A stretch of 64,000 nt of DNA. Source: Trichoplax adhaerens. Taxonomy: Eukaryota > Animalia > Placozoa. This document shows, one piece after another, positions 1 through 62,500 of this stretch. Location of the stretch: contig NW_002060945.1 in assembly GCF_000150275.1 (NCBI RefSeq), positions 7,507,684 to 7,571,683 of the forward strand. Direction: 5' to 3'. A program made the position numbers and the translations under genes. Numbering within the stretch: position 1 is the stretch's first letter; every line of letters starts with the position of its first letter. A model generated the notes under the pieces. The model was not told the origin of the DNA, searched no databases, and worked only from the letters and a program-made list of their open reading frames with translations.

Positions 1-855
1 ATGTTATATACGAGTATACGTGTAATCCCTAGGCAGTAAAATTTGTTCTACTGTAATTCTATTGGACCTTCAATAGCGAATTTTACTGTCTATTTTGCTG
101 CCTTACTTGTGATAGTTTATGTTATATACGAGTATACGTGTAATCCCTAGGCAGTAAAATTTGTTCTACTGTAATTCTATTGGACCTTCAATAGCGAATT
201 TTACTGTCTATTTTGCTGCCTTACTTGTGATAGTTTATGTTTAATACGAGTATACGTGTAATCCCTAGGCAGTAAAATTTGTTCTACTGTAATTCTATTG
301 GACCTTCAATAGCGAATTTTACTGTCTATTTTGCTGCCTTACTAGCGATAGTTTATGTACTGTACTATATACTGTATAATAATTAATACGAGTATACGTG
401 TAATCCCTGGAACGAGATCAAGAATTTGAGCTTTCCTTTCCTTAGTCTACTTTATTTGGAAGGCCATGCCAAGCGCGATATCATACACACGTTAACGAGA
501 CATTAGAACTGTAACAATGAATCAGCTCTAGTACGAACATAACTTTAATACCCTATCCTAATGCACGTAAACATTTGTAGCATGTGATCTTAATCTAGTA
601 CCAGTAGATAAGCCGTAAATAGTATTGTACGATATCTAGGATTCCCCACGTTGTATGGCGGCGCGTACACTGCAAGGTAATAAGCAGAGTAGTTTACAAG
701 ACAGGCGATGTTAGGACAATCCCTAGGCAGTAAAATTGATTCTAATTCTATTGGACCTTCAATAGCGAATTTTACTGTCTATTTTTGCTGCCTTACTAGT
801 GATAGTTTATGTACTGTACTGTATATAATGAATGAATACTGTCCATGTAATCCCT
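1..855. repeat. 118-bp tandem repeat (about 3.4 copies, 1-408) plus a detached copy (718-855); each unit has an imperfect inverted repeat
   Basis: Near-identical units start at 1, 119 and 237. A further copy is bounded by AATCCCT at 718-724 and 849-855. TAGGCAGTAAAATT pairs with AATTTTACTGTCTA, and CTATTG with CAATAG. Confidence 0.92.
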
Positions 856-973
856 CTGCGATGATGATTTGTAGGAGATTGCTGCGATCGGCGGCATGAC
901 GACGCGTCAGGTTCTTTTTATCTCTGTGACACGCGTTCTTGTCAAGTCAACGCACGAGTCGTGCGCAGTAGAT

Positions 974-2796
974 ATGACCATATCAGCAGGCGTCATCTAC
1001 CAGTCTCTTCTTTTAGGTTAGAAAGACATTTTGGCTCAAGAGAGGCCTATGGACCTCAGTGAGATTTGGAAATGGATACTTTGGTTTTATGCTAATATTG
1101 AGCATTGAATTGGTTCTATTTTGTATTGGCTATTTACAGTATACCTGTGTTGTCAAGGGATACATTGATTATGATGTATTCCGAGTTCTTAGGAGAAGCA
1201 CTTGTAATACGGGCATTAGCTTGGATAGTGACCATTGGAATATCTTATTTTTTGGCCATTTTAATGATTGCAATGATATACGAATGCATAGATGCAGTTC
1301 AGCAAGGTATGGATGGTATAGAGTTCAATCAGTTGATGGGATTGCAGCTACGGAAAAGTGTATTATTTATTGCCTTCCTTGGAGGATAGGCTGTATACGT
1401 CATGAATATTTTTGTACAGTAATTGTGATGTTACTTCATTCCTGGGGTTGTGTTCATGAAAAGAATTTGAAACCAAGAAAAGTAGTTTAAAATATCTTAG
1501 TTGTGGTTACACTAGTTTTCTTTTACCTACGATAGAATTAAAATTGAATTTACTTCATGTTTTCTCTGACGTTACTGGTGAATTCAACTTGAAAGTAGAT
1601 AGATTGAAATATATTCTCCTAATGATGGCCACTTTAGTTTTCTTTTTACTTACAATACTAATATATTGAATAAAGTCATAGGTAATACGGCCAATCATTC
1701 AAAGGATGCAAATAATACCTTTCACCAATTAATGGTAGGAATCAAGATGGTTATTATTGAATACCTTGTTGATTAAGTAGACATCATTTTCTGCTTACTC
1801 TTTAAAATCCTTTTTAGACTGTTTATCAAAGTGAGAGATCAGAGTTTTTACGTGTAATTAAAGAGCAATCGATCGACGTGAACAAGGAAATGAGTCCATA
1901 CGGATTGTCTATTTTTCAAGTAGGTGGCTATATACGATTGCATTGGATAATGGATACCATTCCATTGCGTGATGATTAGACTTACTCTTTTTTTATACAT
2001 GTAGTGGTTATGCACTAAGCACGACGTCATAGCAATTCAATATTTAATAAGAGAGTGCCAAGGACAAGTTACAGCAAAGACTGCTTTAGGAGATACGTGT
2101 TTAATGCTGGCTTGTGCAGCTTATGCGACCAATCTCACGCGAAAATATAGGACTGTTGAATTGCTAATTATGGAAGGTAAAGTGATGCGGTACAGTCTGT
2201 AGGTAGATGGAGTTTTAACCTTTAAAAAATGAATGAAAGGACACCAAATCTGAAATAGAAATCGCATGTTTTGAACAAATCATCGCGGTTTTATATTGTA
2301 CAAAATTTGGCTAACTAGCAACATAGATATAAAGTTAATTATAACAATTAGACTATAGTTGTTATTCTTCTGGTATTAGCTACGAAAATAGGCGTATTCC
2401 TGTAAAAATCAAGGGTAAAAAAATCTTAAATGGATCATCATGATGTAGTACAATTATGGTTCGGTATTCATTTGAACTTATTTTCGTAATTATAATTTAG
2501 GTTGTGATGTTAACGCAAAAAATTGGACAAATGTAACGGCTTTGAATATTGCAACACGAATGAAAGATGGAAAATTGTGGAAAATATTATTTAAAAACGG
2601 TTGATTTATTCTTATCCAGCTATTTTATTATTAGTCAATAACTTTTATCTTCAATTTTAGTCGTAACGCTGTAGTAACTCCATGTATATTAGGGTCTAGC
2701 TCTAGCGGCTTATTTTTAACGCGGTATATCCTGTTGCTTTCACCATTTTTAGGTGCTGTAATTTCTTTGACGGCTTTAATGAAGTCGTCGAGATAA
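974..2796 (+). CDS. Small ankyrin-repeat protein (6 exons: 974-1016, 1682-1734, 1818-1919, 2005-2176, 2501-2599, 2753-2796)
   Basis: GT-AG joins keep the frame open. The product has ankyrin-like segments TAKTALGDTCLMLAC...VELLIMEGCDVNAKNWTNVTALNIA...KILFKNGA. Exons 1-2 are less certain. Confidence 0.7.
1049..1669 (+). pseudogene. Degenerate intronless multi-pass membrane-protein-like sequence inside predicted intron 1 of the ankyrin gene
   Basis: Hydrophobic segments (WFYFVLAIYSIPVL; ALAWIVTIGISYFLAILMIAMIY; YILLMMATLVFFLLTILIY) are spread over different frames with stops between them. No family recognised. Confidence 0.35.
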
Positions 2797-6840: not shown

Positions 6841-6842
6841 AG

Positions 6843-7000: not shown

Positions 7001-7051
7001 ACACCTGTCGAAGGTTTGGTAGTAAAGTGCCTGTGTACTACAAATCATGTT

Positions 7052-7333
7052 TGCGTAGCAGAAAGTCTCTGCGTACTACAAATGGCGTATGCGTAGAAGA
7101 AAGTCTTTGCAACGACTGCAAATCATGAGTGCGTAGAAGAAAGTCTTTGCAACGACTGCAAATCATGAGTGCGTAGAAGAAAGTCTTTGCAACGACTGCA
7201 AATCATGAGTGCGTAGAAGAAAGTCTTTGCAACGACTACAAATCATGAGTGCGTAGCAGAAAGTCTTTGCAATGACTGCAAATCATGAGTGCGTAGCAGA
7301 AAGTCTTTGCAACGACTGCAAATCAAAGAGTGC
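7052..7333. repeat. 40-bp minisatellite, about 7 copies
   Basis: GCGTAGAAGAAAGTCTTTGCAACGACTGCAAATCATGAGT at 7091, 7131, 7171, 7211, 7251, 7291, plus a diverged copy near 7052. Confidence 0.95.
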
Positions 7334-7511
7334 ATCACTTTCAAAATTGAATGTTCAATTGCCAACAACGATCAGTCCCAAAAACAGACAAGTTCAATCG
7401 AATCCAGCTTTGCCCTAGTTTAGTGGCAGAATTCACTTTCATCTATAAAATAATGGTACTTTCTGCAAATGATGTTTTCGGATATTGTACGCCATCACTC
7501 CAATTTTGCTC

Positions 7512-7775
7512 ATACAGTACAGTAGCTAATGCCTCACATGTTGCATACTGTACAGTGTACAGTGTACAGTATTTTACAGTACAGTACAGTACAGTACTGT
7601 ACACCATAAAGTCACCTACAGTACTGTACGTACAGTACAGTACTGTACACCGTAAAGTCACCTACAGTACAGTACAGTACTGTACTGTACTATACGGTAC
7701 AATCGGAGCGGGATAGGTACTGTACGGTACCGTACTGTACTGTACTGCAAAGACATCAAGCTACAGTACACAGAC
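7512..7775. repeat. (TACAG)n/(CTGTA)n palindromic simple repeat upstream of CLP1
   Basis: Runs such as TACAGTACAGTACAGTACAGTACTGTAC and TACAGTACAGTACAGTACTGTACTGTAC. Confidence 0.9.
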
Positions 7776-15100: not shown

Positions 15101-18100
15101 CGAACATAAGATTATCAGTAGTCAGGATAAAGTGTTAATGGACAGTATTTTCACGTACCATCGACGAATTCCTAATCTTCCCGGATCTCTTCGTATAATC
15201 TTGGTTCAAACAGAAAATTGAGATGTTAGCATTGGTGTATTATCTCAACATGACTTAAGAAAATCAAATGATTCTTTCAATAGTTATTGTACAATTCACC
15301 TCAGCATAGGAGAAAAAGGAAAATAATATTTGCCATATGAAAATTATAGGACTGAGGACAATATTTAAAAGAGCAAAGTAAAATATCCTGGTGCTCAATT
15401 GTTCTGCGAGCTCTTGTCTATTGCAATAATATAATTGAAAGAGCAATTCAATATCATATAGCTATGTTCGATAGTGATATCTTTTTGCAGTTATTAAAGC
15501 TTCGTCCATGTCATTTACTGTTACTATATTTTAACAACTGCTGTCCTTTCGGTTTGATTATATAACATGTCTAACCAACCTCTTATTTGCTTTTTTATAA
15601 TCTGGTCGTAAGTGCCAGTCATTATCAAAAGGACTGCCGGGAGCCCCTTTTATACAGTTTAAGAAATAACAAAGTTTGAGTGTTAGATTATAAGTTGATA
15701 ATCAACAATCCGAAAATAATTTTAACACTCGCATACAAAATAGAATTGCTTCCAAATTATATAAATATCCTTTGGTGAAGAATAGTCTGTAAACGATAAT
15801 AGAAAATCCATTACAAACATTAATCAAAATAAAAACTAATAGAATTGAAATTAACGACTTTATACAATTATTTAATCACTTACTAATAAAGTAGAATGTA
15901 GTACGCGTAATACTAACCTTTGTCCAATAAGAGGAACTGTCAATCTTACTGGGATAATATCTTTATTAACCATAGCCACAAGATAATTTGTAAATCTTGA
16001 AATTCTATGGGTAATATCTTTAGAAGATAATAACATTTTAATATCAAAATGATTTGATAATTATGGCGAAGCAAAGATTATATTGATATTATTACCTAAT
16101 TCTGATAATTGTTCTTTATGGATGCACATTTGATGTTCAAGTTGGTATTTCATCATTCTATTTTGGACTTCTTGCCACGTTATATTTTGTAACTCACTCT
16201 GTGGTAAAGATGAAAGGGAACTTATTATTTTCAAATTATTCCGATCTAATTTGAAACGCGGCAATTAGTCATTTTTGTTATAAAATTGCTGTACCGTTGA
16301 TATTTTTAGTGCTTCTGAGTAGAATGATTTGATCTCAATGAAATGCGATAGATTCCATATAATTCTAATGAGACGCATTGCCCAAGAAGTAAAAGCAATT
16401 ACCAAAAAACAAATGATTGAAGTTGTAAATCTGTAAATGAAATGTATATTTAATCAATGCATTTCCAAATTGATTCATCTAGAAATCAGTCCGTGATATA
16501 TTCGCTATAAATTCAAGTTTACTTATTACAATAAAGAGTACACATAGGGTGCTTTCTATTGTTGCATAACATATTATGATGTTGTCAAAAATAATTTGTG
16601 CTTGAATAATGTAAATACTCGTAGTAAGCTAGCATTATTTCAAGTATCAATCATTCGAGCACGATATTCCTATACTATGATTTTTAAAAGATAACATCAC
16701 TTTAGCCTAGAAAGGATGAGCAAAGGATACCATACCTATTAACACATTGTCCAAGGGGTCTAACAGCATCAGGAATAGTGACTTTATGAGAATCACCAGT
16801 ATGTCCGGATGGTAGTTTATCGCCAAATAAGACAGGATAATCGACACAAGTTATCAAGAAAGTTGTAAAGAGGATTATAAAGAGAAATTGCCTAGAGAAA
16901 AATAGAATCGTTGTGGTAAGCATTTTTTAGTCTACCAAGACAAGCTTTTATTAAAGTCAAGAGGTTACTATCGCTCGTATGTAAACTAGCTATTCTCTTT
17001 TGGGCATCCAGCCGATGATATTGATAGAAAAATGAAGCGATTCAAGGAGGAGGAAGTGGACATTATTATCTATAATATCCTTCCTTTTCTTGCATTACAT
17101 CCAGTACTACTGTACATGCATCCATCAAATAAATCGATAAGTAGAGTAGTGAGGAATAAACTCTCTTATTGTGATGACAACAAGCAATTACAAAACGAAA
17201 GCAATATTTTATATTGTCATTAAGTTCTTCGCTTTGTCGTGTTTCTTGTAAGCGAAAATAATGATTGATTACTGTTGTCAACTAATACTAGCCCTAGACC
17301 ATGAAAGACTAGTCGACGCTTCAATTCGATTGATTTTACAGTGCTTAATTGGTTTTTAGGCCGACTATTTTTCAGAGCTTCATTTTGTTCCATCAATAAT
17401 TATCGCTATCAAGATTATTTCAAAAAAGTTTTAACCATAACAGAATACTTACATTAATTCAAAAACGTAATTGAGAATCATATAGGTAAGGCCATGATTA
17501 ATGTAATATTTATAAACCTATAGAATATTGTTGGGAGAAAAATAAATAAGACATCAATTGAGTTATCATGAAGAAATTGATTTCTTTCTTTAAATTCTCT
17601 TCTATTGAACGATAATGATCAACAGTATAAAACTGTAGTTAAGAAATATTGTTACTTTACTTTACTGCTATTATTGTAAAGATGAGCTATGGTACATTCA
17701 TGGATTGCTTTGCTATTGAAGACATTATTGATGGAGGAGATTGGATACTGTTAGGACATGACTCTTTGAAGTCCTCTTCTCGCGTAGTATACTGAACAAG
17801 CATTACTGTAAGGTGATCGGAGATTATTTCGACATACGCTATAAGGCTAGATAAGTTATATGATTGCTTTCCTGGAAAAAGCAATACTCATCGAGGAGAT
17901 GGCTTACTTGTACTAGTAGGATAGGATGGTTGAAATTTACTTTGTAGCCTCGTATTGTCGAATAGACGAGTCCGTGACTGCTCCATATGGGCATATAGAA
18001 GGGTTTTTGCCTATTTCAACCTAAGCTTAAAAGCTTGGATATAATGTGAATCGACAGTTAGATGGTCTTTGAACTATCGTTGTAGAAATAATTCTGGATA

Positions 18101-19088
18101 GCTCCGTGATCATCCCATAAAATGCGATCCGATTGACTACAGTCAACATAGATGGATCGCATTAGTATTGAAGAAGATACTGTTGATCTAAGAAATGGAT
18201 AGGATAGAATCGAATGGATCTTGTCGAATATATTTTACTATGGTCTTTGAACTATCGTTGTTGAAATAATTCGGGATAGCTCCATGATCATCCCATAAAA
18301 TACGATGCGATTGACTACAGTCAACATAGATGGATCGCATTCGTATTGAAGAGGATACTGTTGATCCGACAAATGGATAGGTTAGAATTATGTTGAATAT
18401 ATTTTACTATAAGACCATTGAAGTTAAAAGGACTATTTGAAGACACATTTCAAGATTGGATGGGATAGAACTCAACAGTGTCTATCTGTGCCATGGATAG
18501 ATTGTTTTGGTATGGAAGTGGATCCTGTTGATCTAGGACATGGGTAGGATAGAATGGAATTGATGTTATCGAATACACCTTACTGCAAGACGATTTAACT
18601 TGAAAAGACTCTTTTCAAGGCACACTTCAAGGTTGGATAGGATGAAAATAAACAGTATCTATCTCCATCGAGCTATCATCATCATCATCGTTTCCACTAG
18701 TATGGATAGCTAGCTCAGTTTAATACCATGCCCATGCGATGTTGATGATTGAGCGAAAAGCAAAGAAGAAAAATCAAGCTCTCCGTCCATTTACAACATG
18801 GACAATATTAGCTGATCGAATGACGTACCCTCCGAAAGAAAACATCCAAATTCTCGATATGATTCCATCGTGCTAACAAAAAAGAAGAAAATTGTATCGA
18901 TGGATGATATCCATAGACAAATAGATGATTTCTATCTTAGTATAGAGAAGAAATAGCAAACCTTTCTTGACATTGCTTTCTTCGTGTACAGTATGAAATT
19001 CATTCAAATAACGTGGAGGTACTTCTTCAGATCCACTTTCCTCCGGTGTATCAGCCAGTAATCTCGTATAAACTGTTTGTAACGGCAT
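12162..19088 (-). CDS. ATG9: Autophagy-related protein 9, more than 20 exons; last 1-2 exons uncertain
   Basis: Spliced peptides RWNHIENLDVFFRRVY, TTFLITCVDY, ITHRISRFTNYLVAMVNK, RHFNELDH, HIHYMPDDW, LEELLSPLITP, GVGDVCSFAEMDIKRHG, GKMELSLINF. Confidence 0.95.
17900..18680. repeat. Degenerate ~175-bp tandem array in ATG9 intron 2 (about 4 units)
   Basis: TGGTCTTTGAACTATCGTTG at 18063 and 18241 (near-identical pair), with more diverged units near 18410 and 18590. Confidence 0.85.
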
Positions 19089-19779: not shown

Positions 19780-21600
19780 GCAGTGGGAGGTTTATCCTGA
19801 GTAGGGATGATATCAAGGAGGTTGGAAATATCGCCTGGGTGATGATATGAATGGACTTGGATTGTGTTTTATTGCACAATGTTGGTAAATATCCTTACAA
19901 GGGACGATGTAGAAGTTGGAAATGTCGGCTGAATGATGATAAGAAATGTAGAATATTTTTCAAAACAGGATACCAGTCAGTATTGTTGGATATGTCAGCT
20001 CAGAAATGATATGATTGTGCTTGGACAGTAATTCTACTCCACAATGATGATGAGAAATGTACAATATTTTTCAAAATAGGATAGCAGTATCGTTGGATAT
20101 GTCAGCTCAGAAATGATATGAATGTGCTTGGACAGTAATTCTACTCCACAATGATGATGAGAAATGTAGAATATTTTTCAAACAGGATATCAGTATCGTT
20201 GGATATGTCAGCTCAGAAATGATATGAATGTGCTTGGATAGTAATTCTACTCTACAACGATGATAAGAAACGTAGAATATTTTTTAAAAGAGGATATCAG
20301 TATCGTTGGATATGTCAGCTCAGAAATGATATGAATGTGCTTGGACAGTAATTCTACTCTACAACGATGATGAGAAATGTAGAATATTTTTCAACACAGG
20401 ATATCAGTATCGTTGGATATGTCAGCTCAGAAATGATATGAATGTGCTTGGACAGTAATTCTACTCTACAACGATGATGAGAAATGTAGAATATTTTTCA
20501 ACACAGGATATCAGTATCGTTGGATATGTCAGCTCAGAAATGATATGAATGTGCTTGGACAGTAATTCTACTCTACAACGATGATGAGAAATGTAGAATA
20601 TTTTCTAAACAGAATATCAGTATTGTTGGATATATCAGCTCAGAAGTGATATGAATGTGCTTGGACAGTAATTCTACTCTACAACGATGATAAGAAATGT
20701 AGAATATTTTTCAAAAGAGGATAGCAGTATCGTTGGATATATCAGCTCAGTAATGATATGAATGTGCTTGGATAGTAATTCTACTCTACAATAATAATAA
20801 TGTAGAATATTTTTACAAGGATGTTATCAGTATCGTTGGATATATCAGCTCAGAAGTGATATGAATGGGCTTGGACAGTAATTCTACTCTACAACGATGA
20901 TAAGAAATGTAGAATATTTTTCAAAAGAGGATAGCAGTATCGTTGGATATATCAGCTCAGTAATGATATGAATGTGCTTGGATAATATTTTATTATACAT
21001 GATACATATTATGTTATCGGCTCAGTAATAATATGAATATACTTGGATAGTATTTTATTACACATTGCTGGTGAACATTCTTACAAGGGCTGATATAGAA
21101 GTGGAGTGAAAAATGTCGGCTGCGTGATGATAGGGATATGCTTGGATAGTGATTCTACTATGCAATCATGTTATAATTCTGCTTGTAATAATAATTATAT
21201 ACAGTAATATAGAATATCTTTACAAGGATGATATCAATGTGGTTGGATATATCAGCTCAGTACTAATACGAATGTACTTAGATAATATTTTATGGCACAA
21301 TGTTATCGGCTCAGTGAGGATATGAATGCACTTGGATAGTATTTTATCACACAATGCTGGTAAACATCCTTACAAATGATGATATAGAAATGGAGTTGGA
21401 AATGTCGACTGAGTGATGATAGGAATATGCTTGGATAGTAATTCTACCATACAATACTAATATTTATATAATATAAAATACTTTTGGCAAGGGTGATATC
21501 AATGTGCTTACAAGTGATGATATCAACGAGATTGAAAATATCAGCTCTGTAATGACAGGAGTATACTTGGATAATAATGCACAAGGGTGTAACAATTTCA
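19780..21600. repeat. 107-bp tandem array upstream of ATG9: about 10 homogeneous central units with diverged flanks
   Basis: TTGGATAT(G/A)TCAGCTCAG recurs near 19986, 20093, 20199, 20306, 20413, 20520, 20626, 20733, 20836, 20943. Confidence 0.95.
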
Positions 21601-22387
21601 GCTAATGTATGTTGAAATGCATTTTATTTTGTTATGCTTAACGATTGAATCAAAGCAGACATGCAGAAATGGCCCAAAGGACGGACGACAGGGATAAAAT
21701 CGACAAATAGTATGGTATAATGGTGCAACAGGTTTAGAATTGCGAGTACATTAGGGATATCCAGCTATTTCATGTTATTAATATCTACACTTCGCCAAGC
21801 GTGGATGATATACCCTGCTACTGCAGTCTAGTCTGGTGTTAAAATTTCAGCTTATTCCACGATTGTATTCATTAATTAATTAATCTTCTAACTTATAGTT
21901 AGAAATGCGGCTAAAAGAGTTCGTCTCCTAAAAGTCTATTACACTGGAAAATACAAAATCAAAACTGAACACACAGCGTACAGTATTATACTTGTAGTAT
22001 GATAAGCATAAGGCATACGAATAGTAGCAGTAAAAAGACTCAGATCTATAATTCCTTATTTTTATTTTTCAATATTCTGTTCAACTGATATATTCATTAA
22101 AGATGCAATAAACGTAAAGTATTCTTACAAAAGCCTTATATATGATAATTTCATTTACGCTTATTCTGTAATTATTTCCAAAACATTCTCGTAGTAAGCT
22201 GAGCGTCTTTATGCAAAGGCTTGATTTTAAAAACATCTTCCCTAGAGAAAACAACTAAAAAAATAGCTTATCAATATAGGTACTATTATACAAGGATCAA
22301 CACTTTTATCGATAGGATAGAAAAATAGGACAATTTTTAACATTCAGTTTTAGGTATGAATGTTCTGTTGAGTCAATATTACGTAAA

Positions 22388-39672: not shown

Positions 39673-39864
39673 ATCTTGAAATTGAGGATATGGTTCAACG
39701 ATGAAATAAAAATGATTAAGACGTTTGTATTTAGGTAATCCAGAATCTTATGGTCAGATTTGGAGTAGAAATTGAATGAGGTAGCAGTCAGCTGTCTTGC
39801 TATCGTGTCTGTTAGTCAAATGAATGGTAGAATTAAGTAGCAATGATGTAATTATAATTATTTC

Positions 39865-40800
39865 TGTTAAATGATTGAAAGACTTTGATAGTAAAAAATC
39901 ATCAATTCTCTGAGGGAGCGATATGAATTGTCGATCGTGAACATTGACAGAAATGTTGACTATATAAAATATTAATGATTGAGTTGATTCCCGTGAATTT
40001 ATTCTTGGAAGATTTGTAGCATGATATAAATAGAGATTTACGATCAGAAAGATAGATATAATTGTTTCTTCCTAATAAGTGAGAAACCTTGGCAGCAAAG
40101 ATCATCGATTCTCTGAGTGGACAATATTAATTGCCGATGGTAAATATAGGCTGAAATGATAGCTAAGTAAAACAACTGTGATTGAATTGCTTCCAGAGAA
40201 TTATTTCTTCAATATCAAAAGCGTACCGTAGCTACTACTAACATCAAGGTATTCTATTCAGAAATATAAAAGGTTTCCTCTTAATGATTGGAAAATCTGG
40301 ATAGCAAGGATTATTAATTCTCTGAATGAACAATATTAATTATCGAAGGTCAATATGAACTAAAATGATAGTTAAGTAAAAAAGAGGTGGTTAAATTGAT
40401 TCCAGTAAATCTTATTTCTTCAATAGTAAAAAAATATATCTACTGTTAATATCAACGTATTTTATTCAGAAAGGTAGATATAATGATCTCCCTTAAATGA
40501 TCGGAAATCTTGATGGCAAAAATTTCAATTCTCTGAGTGAATAATATTAATTAGCGATAGTGAATATAAGCTGAAGTGATCGTAGGTAAAAATAATCGCG
40601 ATCGAATTTGTTCCAGTAAATCTTATTTCTTCAATAGTAAAGAAATATCTACTGCTAATATCAACGAATTTTATCCTGAAAGGTTGACATGATGTTTTCC
40701 TTCAAATAATCGGAAAATCTGAATGGCAAAGATCAGTTCTCTGAGTGAGCTCTATTAATTACCGGCACCGATCATTAACATTAGCAGAAATGATAACTAC
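39865..40800. repeat. Degenerate ~207-bp tandem array (about 5 units) upstream of the second SDR ATG
   Basis: TTCTCTGA(G/A) anchor near 39905, 40107, 40316, 40527, 40735. Confidence 0.88.
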
Positions 40801-40808
40801 GTAAAAAT

Positions 40809-41622
40809 ATGAATGAGTGGATGAATTCTAATGAGTTTTCCCTTCCAAGATGCAAGGTAAGAATTAGAGTTGAAGATCGATATCAAGTAAATAAATACAA
40901 CTCGTTACCGCGTACTGTATTCAATCAAGAACGGTAGATAAACTCTATCGAAATTAAAATGTGGAAATAGATTATAATAGAAGGGAATTAACAGAACAAG
41001 GATTGCCAATCTTAACAAGGAAATGAGTTCAAAAATTGATTTCAGTAGCTTAGCTGTTTTTCTAGCTATAAACTTTTTCCCATTAAATAGGTGGCTGTAA
41101 TTGGCGATTTAAACTGTTTCGATGGATGGCAAAGAGAGCTAAATGCCCTTGCGATCAATTTTAATATCCGCCGATCTAGAAAAAGGTTAGGTACAATCAT
41201 TAGAAGTGAGCCAGAAATAACAAGGCAGCTTTGTGGTCAGTAAGTGCAATAAATAGAATAATTAATAAGTCCGGCCTCCAGTTTTGAGCTGTTTGTTCGT
41301 TGATTTTTATTTATTTATTTACTCTTAAAATACAAGTTGGCCTAAGGATAGTCCAACCGTCTATTTGTCTGTTTGCAGATTTACCTAGAATTCACCTGTA
41401 GCATACTAAGAATAAAGTATTGAAGGTGGAAAGCTACTCGGGATCGAATTATGATCTATTAGATATATGTAATGTATCTTTCAGGTTATAGTAGCGGATT
41501 CTTATAAAGGGGTCTTATTAGGAGATATCGTATTGTAAAGAGGCTTTAGTGAGGATGGCAGCGATGATGAGGAAAAACAATTCGAAATTAGGGAGTGCTT
41601 TGAGTCTACATGTATCATCTAG
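40809..41622 (+). pseudogene. Possible remnant of a Rho/Rnd-like small GTPase gene
   Basis: Splice join 40856/41091 gives ...LPRCK|VAVIGDLNC (cf. RCKIVVVGDxxCGKT) but GKT is missing. The last exon-like block has an in-frame stop and ends ESTCII* (CaaX-like length if T-C-I-I is read loosely). Confidence 0.3.
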
Positions 41623-41639
41623 TTAGAATGCTCATCATG

Positions 41640-42460
41640 TTCTACGGTTCTTTGTATTACAGTTATGTATTAATTCTATCTTGTAATTATTTTAATATAC
41701 ATATATTCACTATATTATATAATTCCTTGTATTCTACCTATGAATTAATTCAATGAACTCTTGCAAATGTTTGATAATCACTATACGAGTGTACCCGAAC
41801 GTAGAACCTGTTGTGCGTGCTTGATGAATTATGTAGTGGCGACTGGCGAAATCGCTGTACGTGAAATTAAAGCAGAAGTTCATATGTTAGTATAGTGTAC
41901 AGATTACATACTGACATATGCGTATACAGTACAGCATCACTATGCATATCTGTCCTAACTATCACTGCAGATACACAGATCCTTGGAGCGATAGATGCGG
42001 GATACAATTATATTTTATATAATATAGATTATAGAATTATTTTAGTATACCTATGAATTAACTCAACTCTTGTATATATTCTTACATTCAACATCTTATG
42101 TAATTCTTTGTATTGGAAGTATCAATTCAATCAATTAATTTCTATCGTTTAAATGCTTTTAAAGTTGTCTTGTATATCTTATGCAGTTCTTAGAATTCGA
42201 TTTATAAATTAAATCTTGCAAACATGTTTTAAATTTATATTCAACATTTTAACTAATTCTTTATATCAGGCCTATAAATTAACTTCATACCCACAATTAT
42301 TTTGGAACCTTATGTTCATAATTTTATATAATTCTTATTACTAGAGCTATAAATTAAATCATATCTTGCAAATTTTTTTAGTTTTATATTCTTAATCTTA
42401 TATAATTCTTTGTACTACAACTATAAATGAACTCCTGTCTTGCAACTACTTTTAACTTTT
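41640..42460. repeat. AT-rich ~75-bp degenerate array, interrupted by unrelated sequence at about 41780-42010
   Basis: AATTCTT...CTAT(A/G)AATTAA motif near 41646, 41721, 42035, 42102, 42184, 42254, 42330, 42404. Confidence 0.75.
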
Positions 42461-43484
42461 TATATTGCTAGTACAATATTATCCTAATTGATATTTATAA
42501 ACATTACTCGATAGAGAATTTACTAGTGGTCATACAGTACAACACAGTACTTATTATATGGAAATAGTACATATTGACCAGTCTTTAAATCACTTCAGCT
42601 ATTCCACAGAGCCATAAGTCTAAAAGGCTCACGACTAATTATTATTTAGAAAGTAAAAATCGACTAATGTAAGCGATAACTGCATCGCTAGAAAAAAATA
42701 AATCCTCCATATCCTAATAAATAATATAATAAACCGATATAGTATATACTGTAAAGATAGCCAGTGTCAATAATCCTGTACTGCATACACTACACTCAAT
42801 GAACGATTATACAATATCTCAAAATGAAAATTAGTCAAGAGAGAGCTTATACACTAGCAGAGCAGTAGTGCAAGTTAACTTAGAAATAAAACCTATACTT
42901 TATTGCTATTGAAAACTATAGTTTTAATTCAGAACGCAATTTTAAGTTGAATTACTCATTCACATGAAAGAAGTATGCCCATGTCAGACTCATGTCGTAT
43001 ACTGATATCGTAGATGATGCCAGTAAAGTTATGGCAATACTTTAGCTTAAGTCAATATTAAAATATTATAACGTCATCAAGTTGAGTGTTGCTAACTAAA
43101 ATCGAACACGATCAGATAGCGACTACGGTAGAATAAAATAAATTTTTGAACACATGGAACAAATTTTTTTGTACTAAAAGAATAAGAAAATAAATTGCAA
43201 GACATTACTCGTAGTTATGGAATAACACATTTTCTCTAGTAAATTCACTACAGACATCAATCCAAGTGTAAATATTCATCATGACCTAATATCATGGATA
43301 TCTAGAAACAATGGCATTATATTTTCCACAAGTTACTATTACGTTGCTACAATCACAAGATATGGTCATTAGGCTAAATTGATAGCTGTTCAAGTATCAA
43401 CTAATATGAATGGCTTGTTGTAGATAGAATGCTATACTGGTACATCTTCAATGATTTGATGTTAAAATTAAGGTTGGTTCCTTC

Positions 43485-47910
<4,426 letters not shown>

Positions 47911-48008
47911 GATGGTTACTTTTGGAAACAAGGTAATTGGAGATCGTGATATTGCGTGCTAATAATCCAACGTGAGGAGGAAATGAAGATCGAGGAGACA
48001 AGGGACGG

Positions 48009-48041
48009 AATTGCTCAAGAGATTACGTAATTTACCCGTGG
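48009..48041. promoter_or_regulatory. Conserved promoter block containing palindrome ATTACGTAAT (PAR-bZIP/E4BP4-type site)
   Basis: The 33 bp are identical at 48009-48041 and 50928-50960 while flanks diverge. About 100 bp upstream of the pip ATG. Confidence 0.5.
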
Positions 48042-49399
48042 TAGTGAGAAACACTCGCTAGCTTTCAAGTTAAATAAATACATAAGAAATCTACCAATTA
48101 TAATTATGTTCTATTTCGAATGGACTGATCATTATTATTCAACTATCATCATCATCATCTAATTATTTATTCAAGACCATGTGCAAAATGACTTGTCACT
48201 GTTGTTGCTTCTATTGCTGATGTACCAGTGTCGATTCGATTATCCCCGATGGCTGAGAATGAGTGAAAAGTTGCAACACTATTTTGCACACGATGCTCGT
48301 TTACACCGCGATAGAACCGACCGATTAGAATTATGTTTCATCAACCAAGAAATAGGATCAGCGATTCTAGACTGGTATTCTGTAGATTAACAAGGTTTAG
48401 GATAGCAGTCTATTTAAATCAAAACGAACTATCCATGCTGTCTTCGAGATTGCTGCAGATACACTCGTATTGTATACCAAGTATGGCCATGTTTAGAGAT
48501 TAGTAAGATTGTGATCTTACTCACCTCTAAATATTACTTTTATTATCCATCATACTACAGAAATTGACAGCAAAGGCGATCCATCTCTTTCTTTCTCTAT
48601 TTGACTACTTTGCACATATTGGCTGGCTATGATTAATGATGAAGAAATCGATTGCAAAAGCTATCGATCCATCATGTTTGTAGATCATCATGAAGGCTTT
48701 TCCCTGCAACCTGGATCGTAGAATAAGTAGACTCTATACAGTTATATGCTTTAAAGTGGGTAGTTTGCGCTGCAATGGAACTGTGGTGTGCAAAATCACC
48801 TACTGCTATTGGACTTGCTTTCTACTACAGTGGTATCAATCAAGACTATAGCAGACGCCTTGAAGAGGTGACATTTCATTTTGCACACAGTATAATCTTG
48901 TGTTGCAATACTTAGGTCTAGTTGACGCTTTGAATGGGTGACATTTCATTTTGCACACAGTACATTCTTGTGCTTCATCGTATGATATTGGCTTTTGCAG
49001 TCTAACCTTAACCTCCTATTCTTCCAATTGCTGAGTTGTTAACAAGGTAAGCGAAAGGTTACCTCAAGCATTAGCTAGTTATTCTAGATCTTCCATTGAC
49101 CAGCAAGGTAAATTACTGCAGTTCAATTTGGAGATTGGAATCAGTTGGTGTTAAACCACGATAGAAGTGTAAACACCTATCTCAAGCGAATGAATTGAGA
49201 GCTGCAGCTTAGTTATGCCATGAATAATGCACAACAATATTCAACCATTTCAAGCAACATCAGTCTACTGTAGTGCTAGCCAAAATGGCCAATTATGGGG
49301 GCTTATATAGAATGATAGTTGCGTTCGCTTGGATTATATCGAGGCTTATCCATCAATTGTTTCAAATGCTTCAATAGTCACATTAATAAACCCTCAACT

Positions 49400-50400
49400 A
49401 GGATAGAATAGTATAAAATCATAATTCGATTCATCCCTCGATATACTGCAGGCAAACGTCAAAAATGGATGCCTTGAAATTGTACCTGCTATCATTAATA
49501 TTATCAGGTAAATCGGATCATGGATTACCATGAGAAATATTTAATGGTATGCATGAGTTTATGTTTACTGATCAGTCGATTTTAAAGTTTCTACTTTAAT
49601 ATGGACAGGATCTAAAAAATGGCATTAATTCATCTCTTAATATTACGGTAGACAGATATAGAAAGTTAAGCCGTTGAGGGTTGTAACTTGTTATTACCGA
49701 TAATTATCGGATAGGTCAGATCATGGATTACCGTTATGGTTATTGGCATTCGATATAATTTGGATTCCTCTAATCTATCGATCACATGTTATATTTCTAT
49801 TTTAGTATTGATAAAAATTAGAAAATAAATGGTGATAATAGTTCATCTCTTGATATTGTTCTAGACAAATATCGAAAATTTAATATATAGAGAGCTGTAA
49901 CTATCATCAATATGATCGGGTAAGTTAGATCATCAGTTAACTATATTATCGCTATTCGAATTCAATATTGTGAATTTGCTTTATATTTAGGCCAGACCAG
50001 ATTCTGGATAGCCTACTCTACATGTATTGATCAGATTTCAAACATTTCATTTTATTATCGATAGAATACGCGTACAGTAAATATTGGCATTAATTCATCC
50101 CAGGATAATACCATAGATAAACATCGAAATAAATGCGCTAAGAGATGTAGTTTGCCATTTATCATTATCGGGTAGGTCAGATCAATGATTACTATTATTA
50201 TTGCGATAAACATTCATTGGTATGGATTCTTCTACGACTCTGAATCAATTAATTTAAATGTTTCAGTATTAATACCCATGCAGCTAAAATGTACTTATAA
50301 TACTAATTCATATCTTGTTATTACTATAGGCAGACACCGAAAAGTTGTGCATTGAATGCAATGCAATGTCAATACCTCTGCACACCTTGTATCCATGGAT
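49400..50400. repeat. Co-duplicated portion (about 5 units) of the ~210-bp array found at 60490-62500
   Basis: Shares the GGTAGGTCAGATCATGGATTACCG-type anchor. Shorter remnants at about 51410-51600 and 56090-56450. Confidence 0.85.
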
Positions 50401-54967: not shown

Positions 54968-56547
54968 AGGAGGAAATGGAGATTTACGTATCGAGTGACG
55001 AGATTGCTCTCATTGTCATGGTATCTATAGCGGCAGGCACTCGCTAGCTTACAATAAAAATAATAAGGGAATATAGAATTCATTAATTTGGAATTATTAT
55101 CAATTATTCGGTGACGAGATTACTTAAGAGAATATGTTATACGTAGTTTTAATTATACTAACTATAAAATAACGAGGGACTAAAATGAATTAATTTGAAA
55201 TTTTCATCAATTATTCGTAAATAGATCAGCTGATACCCTGTACAAAATAGCTTGTCGTTCTTGTAGCTTCTATTTCTATTATTATAGCGTCTATTCTTGA
55301 CGAGGATAATTCGAAGAGGTGGCAGAATAGCTGCACACAATGATTAACTATTATTTTAACCGCAATAGAATGGATGGATTATATACTCAACAATTGCGTC
55401 AGGAATGATATGCTTGTATTCTGTAGTTGAACAAGAGTTGGGAACTTAGGATAACAGTATGTTTCAATGCCGTCTATTGTGGCAAAAGCCTTACTAAAAT
55501 TAATAGAAAATATAGAATTAATTAATTTGGAAAGATCATCAATTAGTCGTTAAAGGATTAGGTGAAGTCTTGTGCAAAATAACTTGTCCTGCCTGTAGCT
55601 TCTAATTCTACTGTTATACTGAGTACTCTTGATGAGGAGGGTGAATCGAAGAGGTGGCGGAGTATTCTACACACTCTGATTATTTAAACGGCCGTAGAAC
55701 TGATGGATTATAAAATCAACAATTGTATCTAGAAATTATATGTTTGTGTCCAGTGACTGAACAATTGCTAGGAATGTAGAATAGCGGTATATTTTTATTA
55801 ATGTGGTCTACAGTATTGTGGCAGAGGGGCACTCGCTAGCTTTCATTATACTAACTGTAAAATAACTAACTCCCTGTTCTTACGCTCACTGGCTAGTTCA
55901 TAAGATAAACAAGAGGTTGTTTTCAACTTTAGCTAGTCTTTTCTGATCTTCCGTTGATAAACAAGGTAAATTGCTGTAGTTCAATTTGGAAATTAGGATC
56001 AATTTGTATTCAACCTCGGTAGAACCGCAGTACCGTCCGGTAAATCATGTCTTAAATAATGATGGCTGCTATCAAATAGATTATACCAATGCCTATCCAT
56101 CAATCGTTTCAAATGCTTCAATCTTAACATTAATAAAGCCTTAACTGGTATAAAATTATATAAAATCATGATTTAATTCGTCCATTGATATACTATAGGA
56201 AAACGTCAAAAGTCAAAGCCTGAGTGTACCTACTATCATTAATATTAGAAATGTCGGGTAAGTTAGATCATGGATTACCGTTTATTATTATTTTAATAAT
56301 ATACTGTACATGAGTCTACGTCCATCAATCAGTTGATTTCAATGTTTCTATCATATGAATTGGATCCAAAATGGCATCAATTCATCCCTTAATATTACTG
56401 CAGACAGATATCAGAATTTAATGCGGTGAAAGCTGCAGCTAACCAGAAAAGTTATAGTAATACTTTGACTAAAATTAATTCTAGTATATTGTAATGCAGT
56501 CAAGGTTGTTGAGTATTGCTAATTAAAATCGAATATAATCAGGTAAT

Positions 56548-56905
56548 TGTAACATTATGATCTTATATAGAAGATGCCTAGTATAGTAATATCCTAATAT
56601 ACGAATGCTTATTATATACCATTTAAGTACTGTATTGCATTACATTCATAATGTACGACATCATGACGACATATAGACGACATGCTATACATATAAAGAC
56701 ATTATCTCAATCTCATCTAAAACCTATAAATACCCTTGTAAGCTAACTCGTTAGTCAGTTCCTACATTCCTGCTATCTCAAATACCTTATCTATAACAAC
56801 CATATCATTGATAGCCTATAACTTGTATCTCAATAAAATCCTTTATACCTTCTATCATCGTCTACCTTAAAATACTTTACGCTACTTAAAGAAGATATTA
56901 TTACA
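56548..56905 (+). mobile_element. Solo LTR (358 bp)
   Basis: TGTAA...TTACA termini, perfect 5-bp TSD GTAAT (56543-56547 and 56906-56910), TATAAATA at 56725, AATAAA at 56832. Empty site AATCAG-GTAGT-GACCAA in the paralogous segment near 51691-51707. Confidence 0.88.
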
Positions 56906-57217
56906 GTAATGACCAATGTAGAATGGAATAAACTTTTTCGACACACCAAACAAATTTTATTACTAATAGAAGAAATTAATCCATCAAAAAAAAGTTTATT
57001 TGCAGAATAAAACATTTTCTTTACTAAATTCCATTACACAGACGTTAATGCAAGTCTAAATAATCGCGATGAAGTAAATGTCATGAATATTTCACTACTA
57101 TATTGATGCAACATTATTGTAGGGTCATTAGGTCGGATTAATAACTATTCAAGTAGATAGTATATTATACTGGTACATCTTTCATCAATTGATGTTAAAA
57201 ACGTGGCTGTTTCCTCT

Positions 57218-59377
57218 CTAAATATTACGAAATTTATCAGTAGCCTCTGTAAGTCTTCCGATTATCCCACGTTCATAGTCATTATGTCCGACATCGGGAA
57301 CAACATGAAATTTAGCCTCTGGCCATGCCTAAGGGAACATGCATATGTTAGAATGAAAATGTAGAGTAGAACTACAACTTCTTTGTAGTGAACAAATTAA
57401 GAACAGCTCATTTGTCTATCAAATTTGAACCTTATGCAAATCCCGTGCGGTCTGGATGGGACATATGACATCATATCATCCTTGCACAATGGCACCTGAT
57501 ATATGTCGAATCTTTTCCACGTTATCCAGAATGTGATTTGTACTCTTAAAATATCCGCCATGAACCATGAAATGGCTTCAATCATAAAAACATACCGGAT
57601 AGAAAGACAGTCACTGTTGAATTAATTTCAATATATAACGTTATGATCGACAATATTAACTAGGCGAAAACTTGATGCACCATTCAATATGAGCTAAAGC
57701 GAGGGTGAAATGGTCAATTTCAAAGAGAGCGAGGACTTCTTCGTCTATTAATAGTCTTAATATTGACAATTCCCATTTGCACCATGCACATGTATATCGT
57801 ATTTCAACCTATATGTTAAGTATAGGATATAAACCAAAATGATTTCGTTTTCTACAAACTATCAATATCGCAATGCCGTTACCGCATATAAAGAATTGGT
57901 TATAAAATGCTGACGTGTGAATAGCAGTTTGGCCTTACCTCTTCGTCATTGCCAGTCAAAGGGTGATAATATGCACCCATCACGTTCTCCACCCTCAACC
58001 TTCGTATATCAAATTTTATAATCAATACAAATGATCAAATTAACTTCTCATCAGGATTGATCATACTGCTCACGTAAAGAATAATATACTGGCAATGAGA
58101 CTAGCATCGTATACAGTATAAGTTAGACGAAGTATGACCACGGCAACTGTATTTGATATCATGTTGTATAATTTACCAGTCGTCAATCGAGTTATTCTAA
58201 ACACTGCAGAATTGGATTTATAGTAATTGGGTATATGCAGTAAATTAAAGGATCACACTGGTCAACTATATCTTAATGGATTACTGCATTATTGCAAAGT
58301 ATAATTTTGTCAAGTACCAGTATCTTTATTTTAGAAATGATTATAATGATTAATGCAATCCAATTCTTGTCAGTGGGGTTCTTCTACCACTACTATCAAT
58401 TTCATCAGAGAGATTTAAAATATTGTATTAGATGGGAATGTGTCCTTTTCCCTCAACTACTGCAGCTGACTAAATGTCAAGATTGGACATTTAGCTCGTT
58501 ACTTTATTGCAATTCTATTGGGAGATTTATGTAAAGCAATAGCAGGAATTGTCTCTCTACAACTACTGATTAAGTATTCGGATTGGACTTTTTGATTTTA
58601 TACTTTATTTTAGTATTATCAGAGTAATCTCCCTAATATAATCTGGTAAAATGCGTCTGTATCCATTTTCTTTTCTCATCATCTACTAATTTGATATCAA
58701 GACTGAATTTTGATTTCTTTATTGCAGTTCTCTTAGAGAGATTTACTCAATGCATTAGAAGGAAATATATCTATTTTCCCCTCAACTAACACTTATTCGA
58801 CGTCAAGATTTACATTTTAAATCTTCTTATTTCGTTGAGATTCGATCAGAGATTAAAATATTGTATCTTAGAAAGAAATGGCTCATTTTCTCTAAATAAT
58901 ACGTTACTGATTCAATACTAGGGTTGAATTTTTGAGCTTCTCACTTTACTGTAGTTTAATCAGCGAGATCTATTCATTGCATAAGAAAGAAATACCTCTA
59001 CTTTCCCCCCCCCTTTACTAGTACTGATTCGATGTCCCGAAGCTCTAACAGTTGCTAACGTAGCAAATAGTAAACATTACTTTAGAGCAACAATTTGTAA
59101 AAAATAATTCATCAGATGTGATTTAAATTAGTCTAATTCCTTATATAATATGCTAACAATGCTCCAATCATCACTACTGCCAATCCATCATACACAATTA
59201 TGGCTAGTTTAAAGAATGGTAAAGCATTCTTAACCTATAGAAAGATCACCGGATTGCCTGATGCATTGCCACACTGTTCGTAATAAATAGTATGAAGATC
59301 GGAGACTTTTAAGAAACCAGAGTCATAAGGCTCAATGTCAGGATAGAGGTCTGGTAATGCTTGTTACTTTGTACCAT
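57218..59377 (-). pseudogene. Proline iminopeptidase copy C, pseudogene
   Basis: Exons 2-5 (including GGSWG) are missing. Exon 1 is 139 nt (frameshift) with donor GT>AT. Exon 6 has a +1 insertion. GRYD is changed to G*YD (TGA at 57476-57478). Confidence 0.93.
58400..59035. repeat. About 5-6 units of the ~117-bp pip intron-1 array, in copy C
   Basis: Same CATCAGAGAGAT / GAAAT..TC / CTCAACT / TCAAGA anchors as 45815-47400, preceded by a homologous unique flank (about 58240 vs 45660). Confidence 0.85.
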
Positions 59378-60489
59378 CGTCGATGGTACAAAGTTAGAAA
59401 CAAAGCAATCTCAGGTAGTAATATTACTTGCTACCAATCCAAGATGAGGAGGAAGAAATGGAGATTTAGGTACCTAGTCACCAAATTGCTCGAGAGATTA
59501 CGTTATACATTACTAATAGCAGAATAACTATGCTAGGGAATAGAATTAATTAATTTGGAATTATCATGAATTATTCATAAATACTATAGATCAGGCGATA
59601 TCCTGTGCAAAATAACTTGTGGCTGTAGCTTTTATTTCTGGTGTTACACTGTCTATTCTATTCTTGATAAGGATGAATTGAAGAGGTAGCAGAATATCTT
59701 GCATACCGTGATTATTTAAACAGCAATAGAACTAATGGCTTATTTACTCAACAATAATGCGTCAGGGATGATATGCTCGCATTTTATGGTTAAATAAGGG
59801 GTTAAGGACTTCGGATAACGGTCTATATTAATACACTCCTCTATCAGTAATCGATACTGTCCTTGAAATAATTCTAGAAAGGGACAGTAAAAGCGATCAT
59901 TCTCTTTCTTTTTTGGCTACTTTGGACAGGTCTACTAGCGATCCATAACGTAGAAATGGATAGCAAAAGTCATCATCAATCCATCATAATTGCGATACTT
60001 GTAAGCTATCTTGGAGGCCTGTACTATTTTTACTCTAGTAAATAGAACAGTATTATTTTCTATACAATTTTGTGCTTTAGAAGGAATGGTTTGGGCTACA
60101 ATTGATCTGCTGTGTGCAAAATGAGCTGCCACCCCATTTGACTTCCTCGCCTAGCTTAGCCCTATTATCAGTCCTATGAATGACCCCGAAACAAGTGACA
60201 TTCCATTTTGCACGCTATACTATACTGTATTCCCTCAATGGTAGAAAGGAAGGCTGTAGCTTATATAGTCTAACTGATTAACTTCTATTCTTCCACTCAC
60301 TGGCTTGTTTATAAGGTAAACAAGAGGTTGTCATCAATTTTAGCTAGTCTTTCCCGATCTTCCATTGATGAGCAAGGTAAATTACTGTAGTTCAATTGGA
60401 ATCGATTTATATTCGACCTTGATAGAACCGCAAACAGCTATCTCAAAGTAAATGTGTTGAGAACTGGAACTTCTTAATATCAACACTGT

Positions 60490-62500
60490 CCGGTAAGTCA
60501 TGTCATAAATAATGAGGATTGCGATCGCATTGATTATATCATCGGCTATCCATTAATCATTTCAAATGCTTCAATATTAGCATTAATAGAGCCTCAACTG
60601 AGATAGAGTGGTATGAAATTATGATTTAATTCGTCCCTTGATTACTGTAGCTAAACGTCGAAAATTAAGGCAGTAACAGTGTATCTGCTATCGTTAATAT
60701 TGTCGGGTAAGTCGGATCATGGATTACCGTTAGTAATATTTAGTAGTCTAGATGAGTCTAAATTTATCGATCAGCTGATTTCAACGTTTCCATTTTAATA
60801 TGGATAGGATCTAAAAAAATGGCATCAATATATCTCTTAATATTACTGTAAACATATATCGAAAGTTAAGGCGTTAAGAGCTATAACTTACTTTCAACAA
60901 CATGATCGAGTAGGTCAGATCATAGATTACCGTTATCGTTATTAGCATTTGATATTGTGGATTACTCTACGTCTATCAATCAGATGTCAGTATTTCTATT
61001 TCAGCTTAGACAAAATTTAGAAAAAAATGACATTGATTCATGCCTTGATATAACTCTAGATAGATATTGAAATGGATACGTTGAGAGCTGTAGCTTGCTG
61101 TCATCAACATTATAGGGTAGATCACATCGTGGGTGGCCGTTATCGTTATTAGCATTTGACATTGTAGATTGCTCTACGTCTATCGATCAGATGTCAATAC
61201 TTCTATTTCAATATCGATAAAATGTAGAAAAAATGACAGAAGTTCGTCTCATGATATTTCTCTAAACCGAATATTGAAAGTTGAATATGTTGAGGGCTGT
61301 AACTTGCTATTACCAATGTTATCGCGTAGGTCAGATCACAGATTACCGTTATCGTTATTAGTATTCGATATTGTGAATAAGTGCACGCCTATCGATCAGA
61401 TGTCAGTATTTCGGTTTCAATATGGACAAAATTTAGAAAAAATAACATTAGTTCTTCTCTTGATATGACTCTAGACAGATATAGAAAATGAATGTGTTTT
61501 AGCGGATACGTTAAGAGCTGTAGCTTGTTATCATCAACATGATCGGATAGATTAGATTATGATTATTGGTTACCATCACGACTGCTTTTGGCATTCGATA
61601 TTCATAGATTGCACAATATGTATCGATCAAATGCCAATATTTTAATTCCAATATCGATAGAATTAAAAAAATGACTTTGGTTTAGCTCTTGATATTACTA
61701 TTGACAAATATTGAAAATTAATACGTTGAGAGTTGTAATTTACTACCATCATTATCGGGTTGGGCAGATTCGATAAAAAGTTATCGTTATCGCCTTTATT
61801 AGTGTTTGATATTGTGGATTACTACATTTATTGATCAGATTTCAAAGTTTCCAATTCAATTAATATCGATAGAATTTTTTTAAAATGATATTAGTATGCT
61901 TATTGATATTATCGTAGGGCAAACATCGACTATAAATATATTGTCAGCTTTAGCTTGCTATCATCAATATAGAGTAGGCTAAATCATTGATAACCGTTAT
62001 TATCGCGATTGGCATTTTATCTAATGGATTCTTCTACGTTTACCAATCCGTTAATTTAAATATTTCAGTATGAACATCCATAGAGTTAAAAATTAGGATA
62101 TGAATTTATCCTTAATATTATTATAGATAGACATCGTACATGAATGCCTTAACCTCTGTACAGCTCGCTATCATCAGCATAATCGAGTGGGTTAGATTAT
62201 TGATTACTATTATATCCGCTATTGATTTAGTGGTAAGGAATATTCTATACCTGTCGACCAAATAATTTAAATGTTTGAATCTTAACATCTACAGAGTCTA
62301 GGATAAAATTAAATTAAAATCATCTCTTAATGCTACCAAAGGCAAAAGTCCAAATGAACATGTTGAGAGTAGCAGCTTATTATTAACATTACTGAGCAAC
62401 TCTGATTATTGACTACTGTTGATTTTAATAAATGTTATGGATTAATCTACCCATATCATCCATAGATCAATATCAAAATGGCACTTAATTTTAACAAATT
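60490..62500. repeat. Degenerate ~210-bp tandem array (about 9-10 units) between pip C and MINDY4
   Basis: GATCAT.GATTACCGTT-type anchor near 60714, 60917, 61124, 61333, 61554, 61766, 61981, 62194, 62403. Confidence 0.92.

Follow-up and report, generated by a model that had tools for sequence, protein, structure and literature searches.

Locus-private minisatellites concentrate around gene starts in a region of the Trichoplax adhaerens genome

Tandem repeats are a known component of the genome of the placozoan Trichoplax adhaerens. With Tandem Repeats Finder (TRF), 9,208 minisatellites have been catalogued, with units of 7-1204 bp and together 2.4% of the sequence; 94% of the repeat types have fewer than four copies, and transposons make up 0.13% of the genome (Wang et al. 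2010, PMC2871265). Yeast and human promoters are enriched for variable tandem repeats, which are found at about 25% of yeast genes and for which a role in tuning chromatin and expression has been suggested (Vinces et al. 2009, as summarised in PMC3899988). Trichoplax promoters also carry another repeat feature, as Mutator elements are concentrated in the promoters of about 3,000 housekeeping genes (Kim et al. 2025, PMC12221973). Here we analyse a stretch of 64 kb from T. adhaerens (contig NW_002060945.1, positions 7,507,684 to 7,571,683; called the window below). A preliminary description of this DNA had claimed that most gene 5′ ends carry a private tandem array of roughly nucleosome or half-nucleosome period. 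It proposed that a position-dependent process duplicates promoter-proximal DNA in chromatin-sized steps or that such arrays are selected.

The arrays analysed here are the same objects in the same genome as those of the published catalogue, with which their density, one in about 9 kb, agrees (PMC2871265). The catalogue reports a link to the upstream region of genes for the ACAGT microsatellite only; the gene position of minisatellites, their privacy and the differences between T. adhaerens (H1, the genome of the window) and Trichoplax sp. H2 (H2, used for comparison) were left unanalysed there (PMC2871265). New relative to this work is that minisatellites concentrate around gene starts, which is supported in the region studied here.

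We detected arrays with TRF and sensitive self-BLAST and tested their position in the window together with its left flank (200 kb, of which 176 kb are non-N), thus in about 240 kb of one chromosome region. All counts of arrays, genes, gaps and introns below refer to this region unless a part of it is named. As the left flank had not been seen when the claim was made, it serves as an independent test set. In the permutation tests every array was collapsed to a point, which removes the length contributed by the arrays themselves. Of the 26 independent non-coding arrays, 22 have a start codon no more than 1 kb away, compared to 31% of the non-coding positions (0 of 20,000 permutations), and 24 are closer to a start than to a stop (null 60%, p = 0.0002). 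When the flank is taken by itself, the 1-kb zones around start codons contain 9 of the 13 arrays but 27% of the non-coding positions (p = 0.002), and 12 of the 13 are closer to a start (p = 0.018). The position dependence is therefore replicated in unseen sequence, and the 5′ bias is real in this region. Arrays are biased to gene 5′ ends, that is, to the untranscribed spacer on the promoter side and to the first one to three introns.

Gaps and introns give the same picture. An array is present in nine of ten divergent gaps, in seven of 14 head-to-tail gaps and in one of ten convergent gaps; after length adjustment the contrast between divergent and convergent gaps stands at about p = 0.05. In introns 1-3 (n = 75, 33 kb) arrays from about seven independent loci add up to 5.1 kb, whereas not one is present in the later introns (n = 188 with 38 kb in total, including 18 introns of at least 500 bp). 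This contrast has a p value of about 0.003 by length and of 0.02 among long introns only. For the window itself, the earlier statement that convergent gaps and downstream introns are free of arrays agrees with our outcome.

That most gene 5′ ends carry an array holds for the window, where 10 of 12 genes have one within 1 kb of the start, but not for the flank (10 of 23). Altogether 20 of 35 genes have such an array, so that about half of the genes here carry one within about 1 kb of the start. Array density in the window is about 2.5 times that of the flank. Essentially array-free is a tandem family of seven genes for secreted proteins (flank, about -49 to -12 kb) with spacers of 2-6.5 kb; the exception is found in one gene, whose only intron contains a weak 77-bp repeat of two copies. 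The genes of this family have two or three exons, a signal-peptide exon being followed by a long exon which opens with an arginine-rich stretch. Three further repeats of the flank, with units of 78 bp (-112156 to -111607), 30/90 bp (-91357 to -91041) and 129 bp (-5862 to -5601), lie inside long open reading frames and are therefore coding minisatellites, not promoter arrays.

The arrays of the window are the following (window coordinates, unstranded).

1-855: 118-bp array upstream of the ankyrin-repeat gene; 3.0 copies at 98% identity in 1-358, remnant at 718-855
7037-7333: 40-bp minisatellite of 7.4 copies in the CNOT9/CLP1 divergent gap, seen by TRF and self-BLAST
18062-18664: 178-bp array in the ATG9 5′ intron (predicted intron 2), 430-1030 bp downstream of the ATG at about 19095
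19805-21578, including degenerate tails: 107-bp array between the ATG9 start and the CYP stop; array proper 19932-20982
25113-25865: degenerate array of about 100-105 bp in CYP intron 1, beginning a few bases past the intron donor site
26318-27016: 348-bp tandem duplication of 98.6% identity, 343 bp upstream of the CYP ATG, present in H1 and H2
30643-31489: array of about 185 bp in the SDR1/CCDC93 spacer; 4.5 units of 77-87% identity
32444-32980: degenerate array of 136-164 bp in CCDC93 intron 3 (intron 32302-33192 from RNA splice joints)
39853-40819: array of about 205 bp upstream of SDR2, starting 186 bp from the SDR2 ATG
41628-42466: degenerate 75-bp array midway between the pipA stop and the SDR2 start; TRF core at 42310
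45958-47380: degenerate array of about 115-117/235 bp in pipA intron 1, paralogue of 58474-59036 in pipC
49305-50339: degenerate array of about 210 bp upstream of pipA, paralogue of the array at 60.6-62.3 kb; newly added, with detection at 49613-50198
55048-55794: degenerate repeats of about 110/332 bp upstream of pipB, homologous to 59535-59822; newly added
60641-62297: array of about 205 bp between pipC and MINDY4, part of the duplicated pip upstream segment

All arrays of the preliminary description were recovered with TRF and self-BLAST at periods essentially as given there, and a few more were added. Its 75-bp array exists, with an extent now amended to 41.6-42.5 kb around the TRF core at 42310. 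The copies indeed range from near-identical to barely alignable, with identities from 98% (118-bp and 348-bp units) down to 66-70%. The 107-bp array contains about 10 copies of 91-93% identity and has higher-order units of 213/427 bp. At its left end the 118-bp array abuts an assembly gap of 1041 N. Window positions 1-873 recur with 100% identity on the unplaced contig C877, on which additional 118-bp units are present. The array is therefore longer than assembled, and the gap to the left of the window probably hides the longer array. Pentamer repeats are found next to four arrays; at the 40-bp array, pentamer repeats of the ACAGT type stand on both sides (6.9 kb and 7.55-7.75 kb).

The criteria of a minisatellite or variable-number tandem repeat apply to these arrays. 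The units are arranged head to tail, they occur at a single locus (with the exception of the pip paralogues), and copy number varies between H1 and H2. The arrays are locus-private minisatellites with ages from fresh duplication to near-unrecognisable. We reject satellite DNA as a class, as the arrays are 0.2-1.8 kb long, single-locus and located between or inside active genes.

Privacy was examined in the whole genome (105.6 Mb, 1414 contigs, GC about 33%), against which the whole 63 kb of the window was searched in four pieces. The array units have zero copies elsewhere; the search skips very common words, and complex units of several hundred bp are expected to be found regardless. It follows that the arrays are not a transposon family. 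Units collapsing into transposon families, which would have spoken against the original proposal, were thus looked for genome-wide and are not what we see. An origin of the units themselves from miniature inverted-repeat transposable elements or Helitron-type arrays is likewise rejected, since there are no dispersed unit copies and the dispersed elements present are insertions, not units. The view that the units are unrelated between loci and do not form one dispersed family stands, except that the arrays at pip and at "MINDY4" are paralogues.

This exception has a simple structure. Positions 43-62 kb of the window are a threefold tandem duplication of the gene pip (proline iminopeptidase) with its flanks, plus a promoter/exon-1 fragment. 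Homology links the "MINDY4" array (60.6-62.3 kb) with those at 49.3-50.3 kb (pipA) and 55.9-56.4 kb (pipB). The "MINDY4" array is therefore not that gene's own, as had been assumed, but belongs to the duplicated upstream segment of pip. The arrays linked to pip have been inherited through segmental duplication and hence are not independent events. The stray promoter/exon-1 fragment lies at 50.4-51.4 kb. The third pip copy looks degraded, and a further copy of 83% identity is present on the unplaced contig C765.

The only dispersed sequences of the window are located at 408-718, 41783-41933 and 56543-56908, to which an ACAGT-type stretch (7541-7751) and some exons of paralogous genes are to be added. 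The element of about 310 bp at 408-718 splits one unit of the 118-bp array, has at least 30 copies of 80-89% identity and is flanked by an apparent 7-bp target duplication (AATCCCT). The 150-bp element at 41783-41933 is inside the 75-bp array and has two further copies in the genome. Terminal inverted repeats (TIRs) were looked for at the inserted elements and none were found. The element at 56543-56908 (about 360 bp) sits at the junction of two pip units and has at least 39 copies of 96-97% identity on many contigs. For a genome whose transposons are reported as few and inactive, a family this young and uniform is surprising.

The period of the arrays does not bear out the chromatin-sized steps. 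The 27 independent periods are 40, 74, 77, 79, 103, 103, 105, 107, 109, 117, 118, 141 and 144 bp in the lower half and 150, 160, 173, 178, 182, 186, 194, 199, 200, 209, 209, 240, 332 and 348 bp in the upper half. Nine of them fall within 173-209 bp and seven within 103-118 bp. A single broad log-normal distribution with a median of 143 bp accounts for all 27 (scan-window p = 0.30, two-window p = 0.16), so that a nucleosome-scale period is unsupported. Moreover, "nucleosome or half-nucleosome scale" is not discriminating because the phrase spans most of the observed range.

H1 and H2 are collinear across 31 kb with 98.9% identity, and array length differs at two arrays only, the youngest long ones. 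At the 107-bp array H1 is longer than H2 by about 430 bp, which corresponds to four units or to one higher-order unit of 427 bp. At the array of about 185 bp H2 is longer than H1 by about 422 bp or about 2.3 units. The degenerate, older arrays have equal copy number in both. Substitutions amount to 0.45% in coding sequence, 1.08% in other non-coding DNA, 0.69% in old arrays and 2.86% in young arrays, the last figure being inflated by register shifts. The lower value of the old arrays relative to other non-coding DNA is nominally significant (p = 0.018); 1-kb bins span 0.1-2.6%, and therefore we do not read this deficit as constraint. Evidence for purifying selection on the old arrays is thus nominal and does not withstand the regional heterogeneity. 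The non-coding divergence at window positions 18-50 kb is patchy, from about 0.1% (28 and 36 kb) to about 2.6% (37 kb).

At the borders of the 348-bp duplication stands a direct repeat of 3 bp, CAA, a microhomology; this duplication is the only place where a junction can be read ungapped. The motif ACAGT/ACTGT is 2.5-fold enriched across the arrays. The enrichment comes from about six arrays and most are at background, and therefore ACAGT or another motif common to the arrays is rejected. A distant placozoan-like contig of 3.8 kb carries an SDR2 orthologue (69% identity) and is syntenic with the 3′ end of CCDC93. No repeat is found in the 613 bases upstream of this orthologue, the extent of sequence there, and the neighbouring gene call ends about 410 bp upstream of its ATG. 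The corresponding Trichoplax gap upstream of SDR2 is 3.8 kb long, 1.8 kb of which are array.

The divergent spacer between SDR1 and CCDC93 could be delimited with RNA evidence, that is, with assembled contigs from three RNA-type runs, from which exact transcription start sites (TSSs) and expression levels are not readable. The SDR1 transcript reaches position 30486 and the CCDC93 transcript begins at 31659, leaving a spacer of 1172 bp, inside which no transcription is seen in the contigs of the three runs. The 847-bp array makes up 72% of the spacer and ACAGT pentamer repeats are part of the remainder. The RNA contigs run about 620 nt upstream of the SDR1 start codon (29862-30486), which implies an unusually long 5′ untranslated region or an overlapping upstream transcript. 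According to the contigs, the CCDC93 introns are 98, 127 and 891 bp long, and the third one does hold the array which had been placed there (32444-32980).

Six genes of the window were placed by transferring the H2 annotation of the orthologous contig through the 98.9% identical collinear alignment.

22381-25975, minus strand: CYP coding sequence
28808-29862, minus strand: SDR1 coding sequence
31798-36803, plus strand: CCDC93 coding sequence
38302-39667, minus strand: SDR2 coding sequence
43489-48085, minus strand: pipA coding sequence
about 19095, minus strand: ATG9 start codon

Pfam supports CNOT9/Rcd1, CLP1, ATG9, cytochrome P450 (CYP), the two SDRs and CCDC93, and the SDR2 exon is 98% identical to a Trichoplax sp. 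H2 protein. The gene models of the flank stem from a self-trained gene finder and are approximate; some exons, and some first exons after long introns, are missed. Compared with six annotated genes, the gene finder was exact for SDR1 and SDR2, matched start and stop of CCDC93 and was partial for the others. By hand, the first exons of CYP and pipA were patched, one merged model was split and three window genes were added. In the flank the strands of the E2F, Nup205 and cyclin genes agree with the Pfam matches.

We favour, with moderate confidence, the following explanation. The arrays would be private minisatellites born by local duplication, with a 5′ bias that results from tolerance and from fragile TSS-proximal chromatin and without a period set by the nucleosome. 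Most likely, a local tandem duplication of whatever DNA was present starts each array. Then the array could grow or shrink as units are gained or lost by unequal exchange or slippage, in line with the length differences between H1 and H2. Finally, point mutation would erode it until the copies are only 65-70% alike. The period could simply be the length of the first duplicated piece, which would be broadly distributed around 140 bp. As for the bias, tolerance may explain a part of it, because the later introns are at a minimal length of about 115 bp and the gaps between two 3′ ends are short, mostly untranslated region and terminator. Tolerance alone is insufficient because long spacers far from starts are empty. 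The second cause might be open, TSS-proximal chromatin which is prone to breaks or slippage. A TSS-proximal bias in the origin or the survival of duplications is likely, and a dedicated sequence function of the arrays is less likely.

Several points weigh against this explanation. With regard to tolerance, about 70% of the non-coding positions are more than 1 kb away from a start and hold only 4 of the 26 arrays; this share includes 25 kb of array-free spacers in the secreted-protein family. The presence of arrays at nine of ten divergent promoters is equally compatible with selection, and the 0.69% of substitutions in old arrays versus 1.08% elsewhere is compatible with constraint (p = 0.018, with overdispersed bins). 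Furthermore, the flank gene models are home-made, crude predictions, and the scope is 240 kb of one chromosome region.

The alternative that survives best is a selected promoter architecture, in which the arrays would act as spacers or insulators between transcription units, as nucleosome-phasing arrays or as multiplied binding sites; among known systems, the sub-repeats of ribosomal DNA intergenic spacers come nearest to it. The contrast between divergent and convergent gaps fits with it, as does the untranscribed SDR1/CCDC93 spacer, which consists largely of array and partly of pentamers. The old arrays keep their copy number in both lineages at a somewhat low divergence, and a third of the periods (9 of 27) cluster at 173-209 bp. 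However, the units are unrelated and have no enriched motif in common, the periods are indistinguishable from one log-normal, and the difference in divergence does not stand up to the unevenness between regions. About half of the genes do without arrays, among them all seven of the secreted-protein family, and the 613 bp upstream of the distant SDR2 orthologue are free of an array. Selection for arrays, the second half of the original proposal, is thus unsupported by motif or by robust constraint, and we consider such an architecture unlikely.

A different objection is that no special process operates at 5′ ends at all. Free space and ascertainment would suffice if arrays lengthen their own gaps and if gene models and the choice of region exaggerate the bias. 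Indeed, the length-adjusted contrast between gap types is only at about p = 0.05, the window with its 2.5-fold higher array density is the striking case, and the home-made models got two of the six annotated genes exactly right. Against this, the permutation with collapsed arrays controls for the added length and the flank still gives p = 0.002, the introns yield p values of about 0.003 when compared by length and of 0.02 for long introns only, and long array-free spacers distant from starts exist. We therefore regard this objection as distinctly unlikely to hold.

Highly unlikely, in our view, is that the arrays are by-products of promoter-targeted DNA transposons, whose repeated insertion and excision would cause double-strand breaks that leave local tandem duplications after sloppy gap repair: the concentration of Mutator at about 3,000 housekeeping promoters (PMC12221973), the dispersed elements inside the 118-bp array (with its 7-bp target duplication) and inside the 75-bp array, and the pentamers next to four arrays point this way, but the inserted elements are without detected TIRs, most arrays have no nearby element or pentamer excess, two of three dispersed elements within arrays is not beyond chance, and the data hold neither evidence of excision nor direct support for Mutator as a source of breaks.

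A further-reaching possibility, which we find rather doubtful, is a process that acts genome-wide. In placozoans, TSS-centred duplication via template-slippage repair of breaks in the open chromatin of promoters would then have left private arrays at roughly one gene in two, or some 5,000-10,000 loci, with step sizes limited by the length of a nucleosome or an Okazaki fragment. Mutator excision, recombination or replication initiation might cause the breaks, and some arrays would be kept as spacers with a role in organising promoter chromatin or the published promoter hubs.

In Trichoplax, where transposons are nearly absent, minisatellites form the main class of repeats, with about one for each gene. 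If the majority is located within 1 kb of starts genome-wide, the architecture of placozoan promoters would have in them a major component that has so far gone unanalysed, and they would also be a natural record of the sites of small duplications in an early-branching animal. The matter touches on the ACAGT promoter repeats described before, on the promoter hubs marked by Mutator and on the gain of regulatory DNA in compact genomes. Should the bias reflect tolerance only, the arrays would still be useful as hypervariable markers of placozoan lineages.

Four known systems invite comparison. Placozoan Mutator insertions resemble the arrays as a lineage-specific repeat feature concentrated at Trichoplax promoters (PMC12221973). 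Mutator is, however, a dispersed family with a shared TIR motif (PMC12221973), whereas the arrays are without copies elsewhere. Satellites of nucleosome length share tandem units of about 150-210 bp with the arrays, but are long, homogeneous and multi-locus and belong to centromeric or pericentric heterochromatin (PMC8122249). The arrays, in contrast, are 0.2-1.8 kb long, single-locus, euchromatic and gene-adjacent, and their periods extend beyond nucleosome length. In ribosomal DNA (rDNA), the repeats of the intergenic spacer are duplicates of promoter or enhancer elements, and homogenisation keeps them alike among the many gene copies. The likeness to these sub-repeats (cf. PMC6589552) lies in the tandem blocks which fill the untranscribed spacer directly upstream of a promoter. 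Unlike in rDNA, each Trichoplax locus has its own unit, and neither a promoter duplication nor a spacer transcript was seen here. With the variable repeats of yeast promoters the arrays have the enrichment at promoters in common, the yeast type being, as far as PMC3899988 describes it, mostly short-unit, AT-rich and nucleosome-excluding. The Trichoplax arrays differ in that their units are 40-350 bp long and of ordinary complex sequence, and in that they reach into the first introns.

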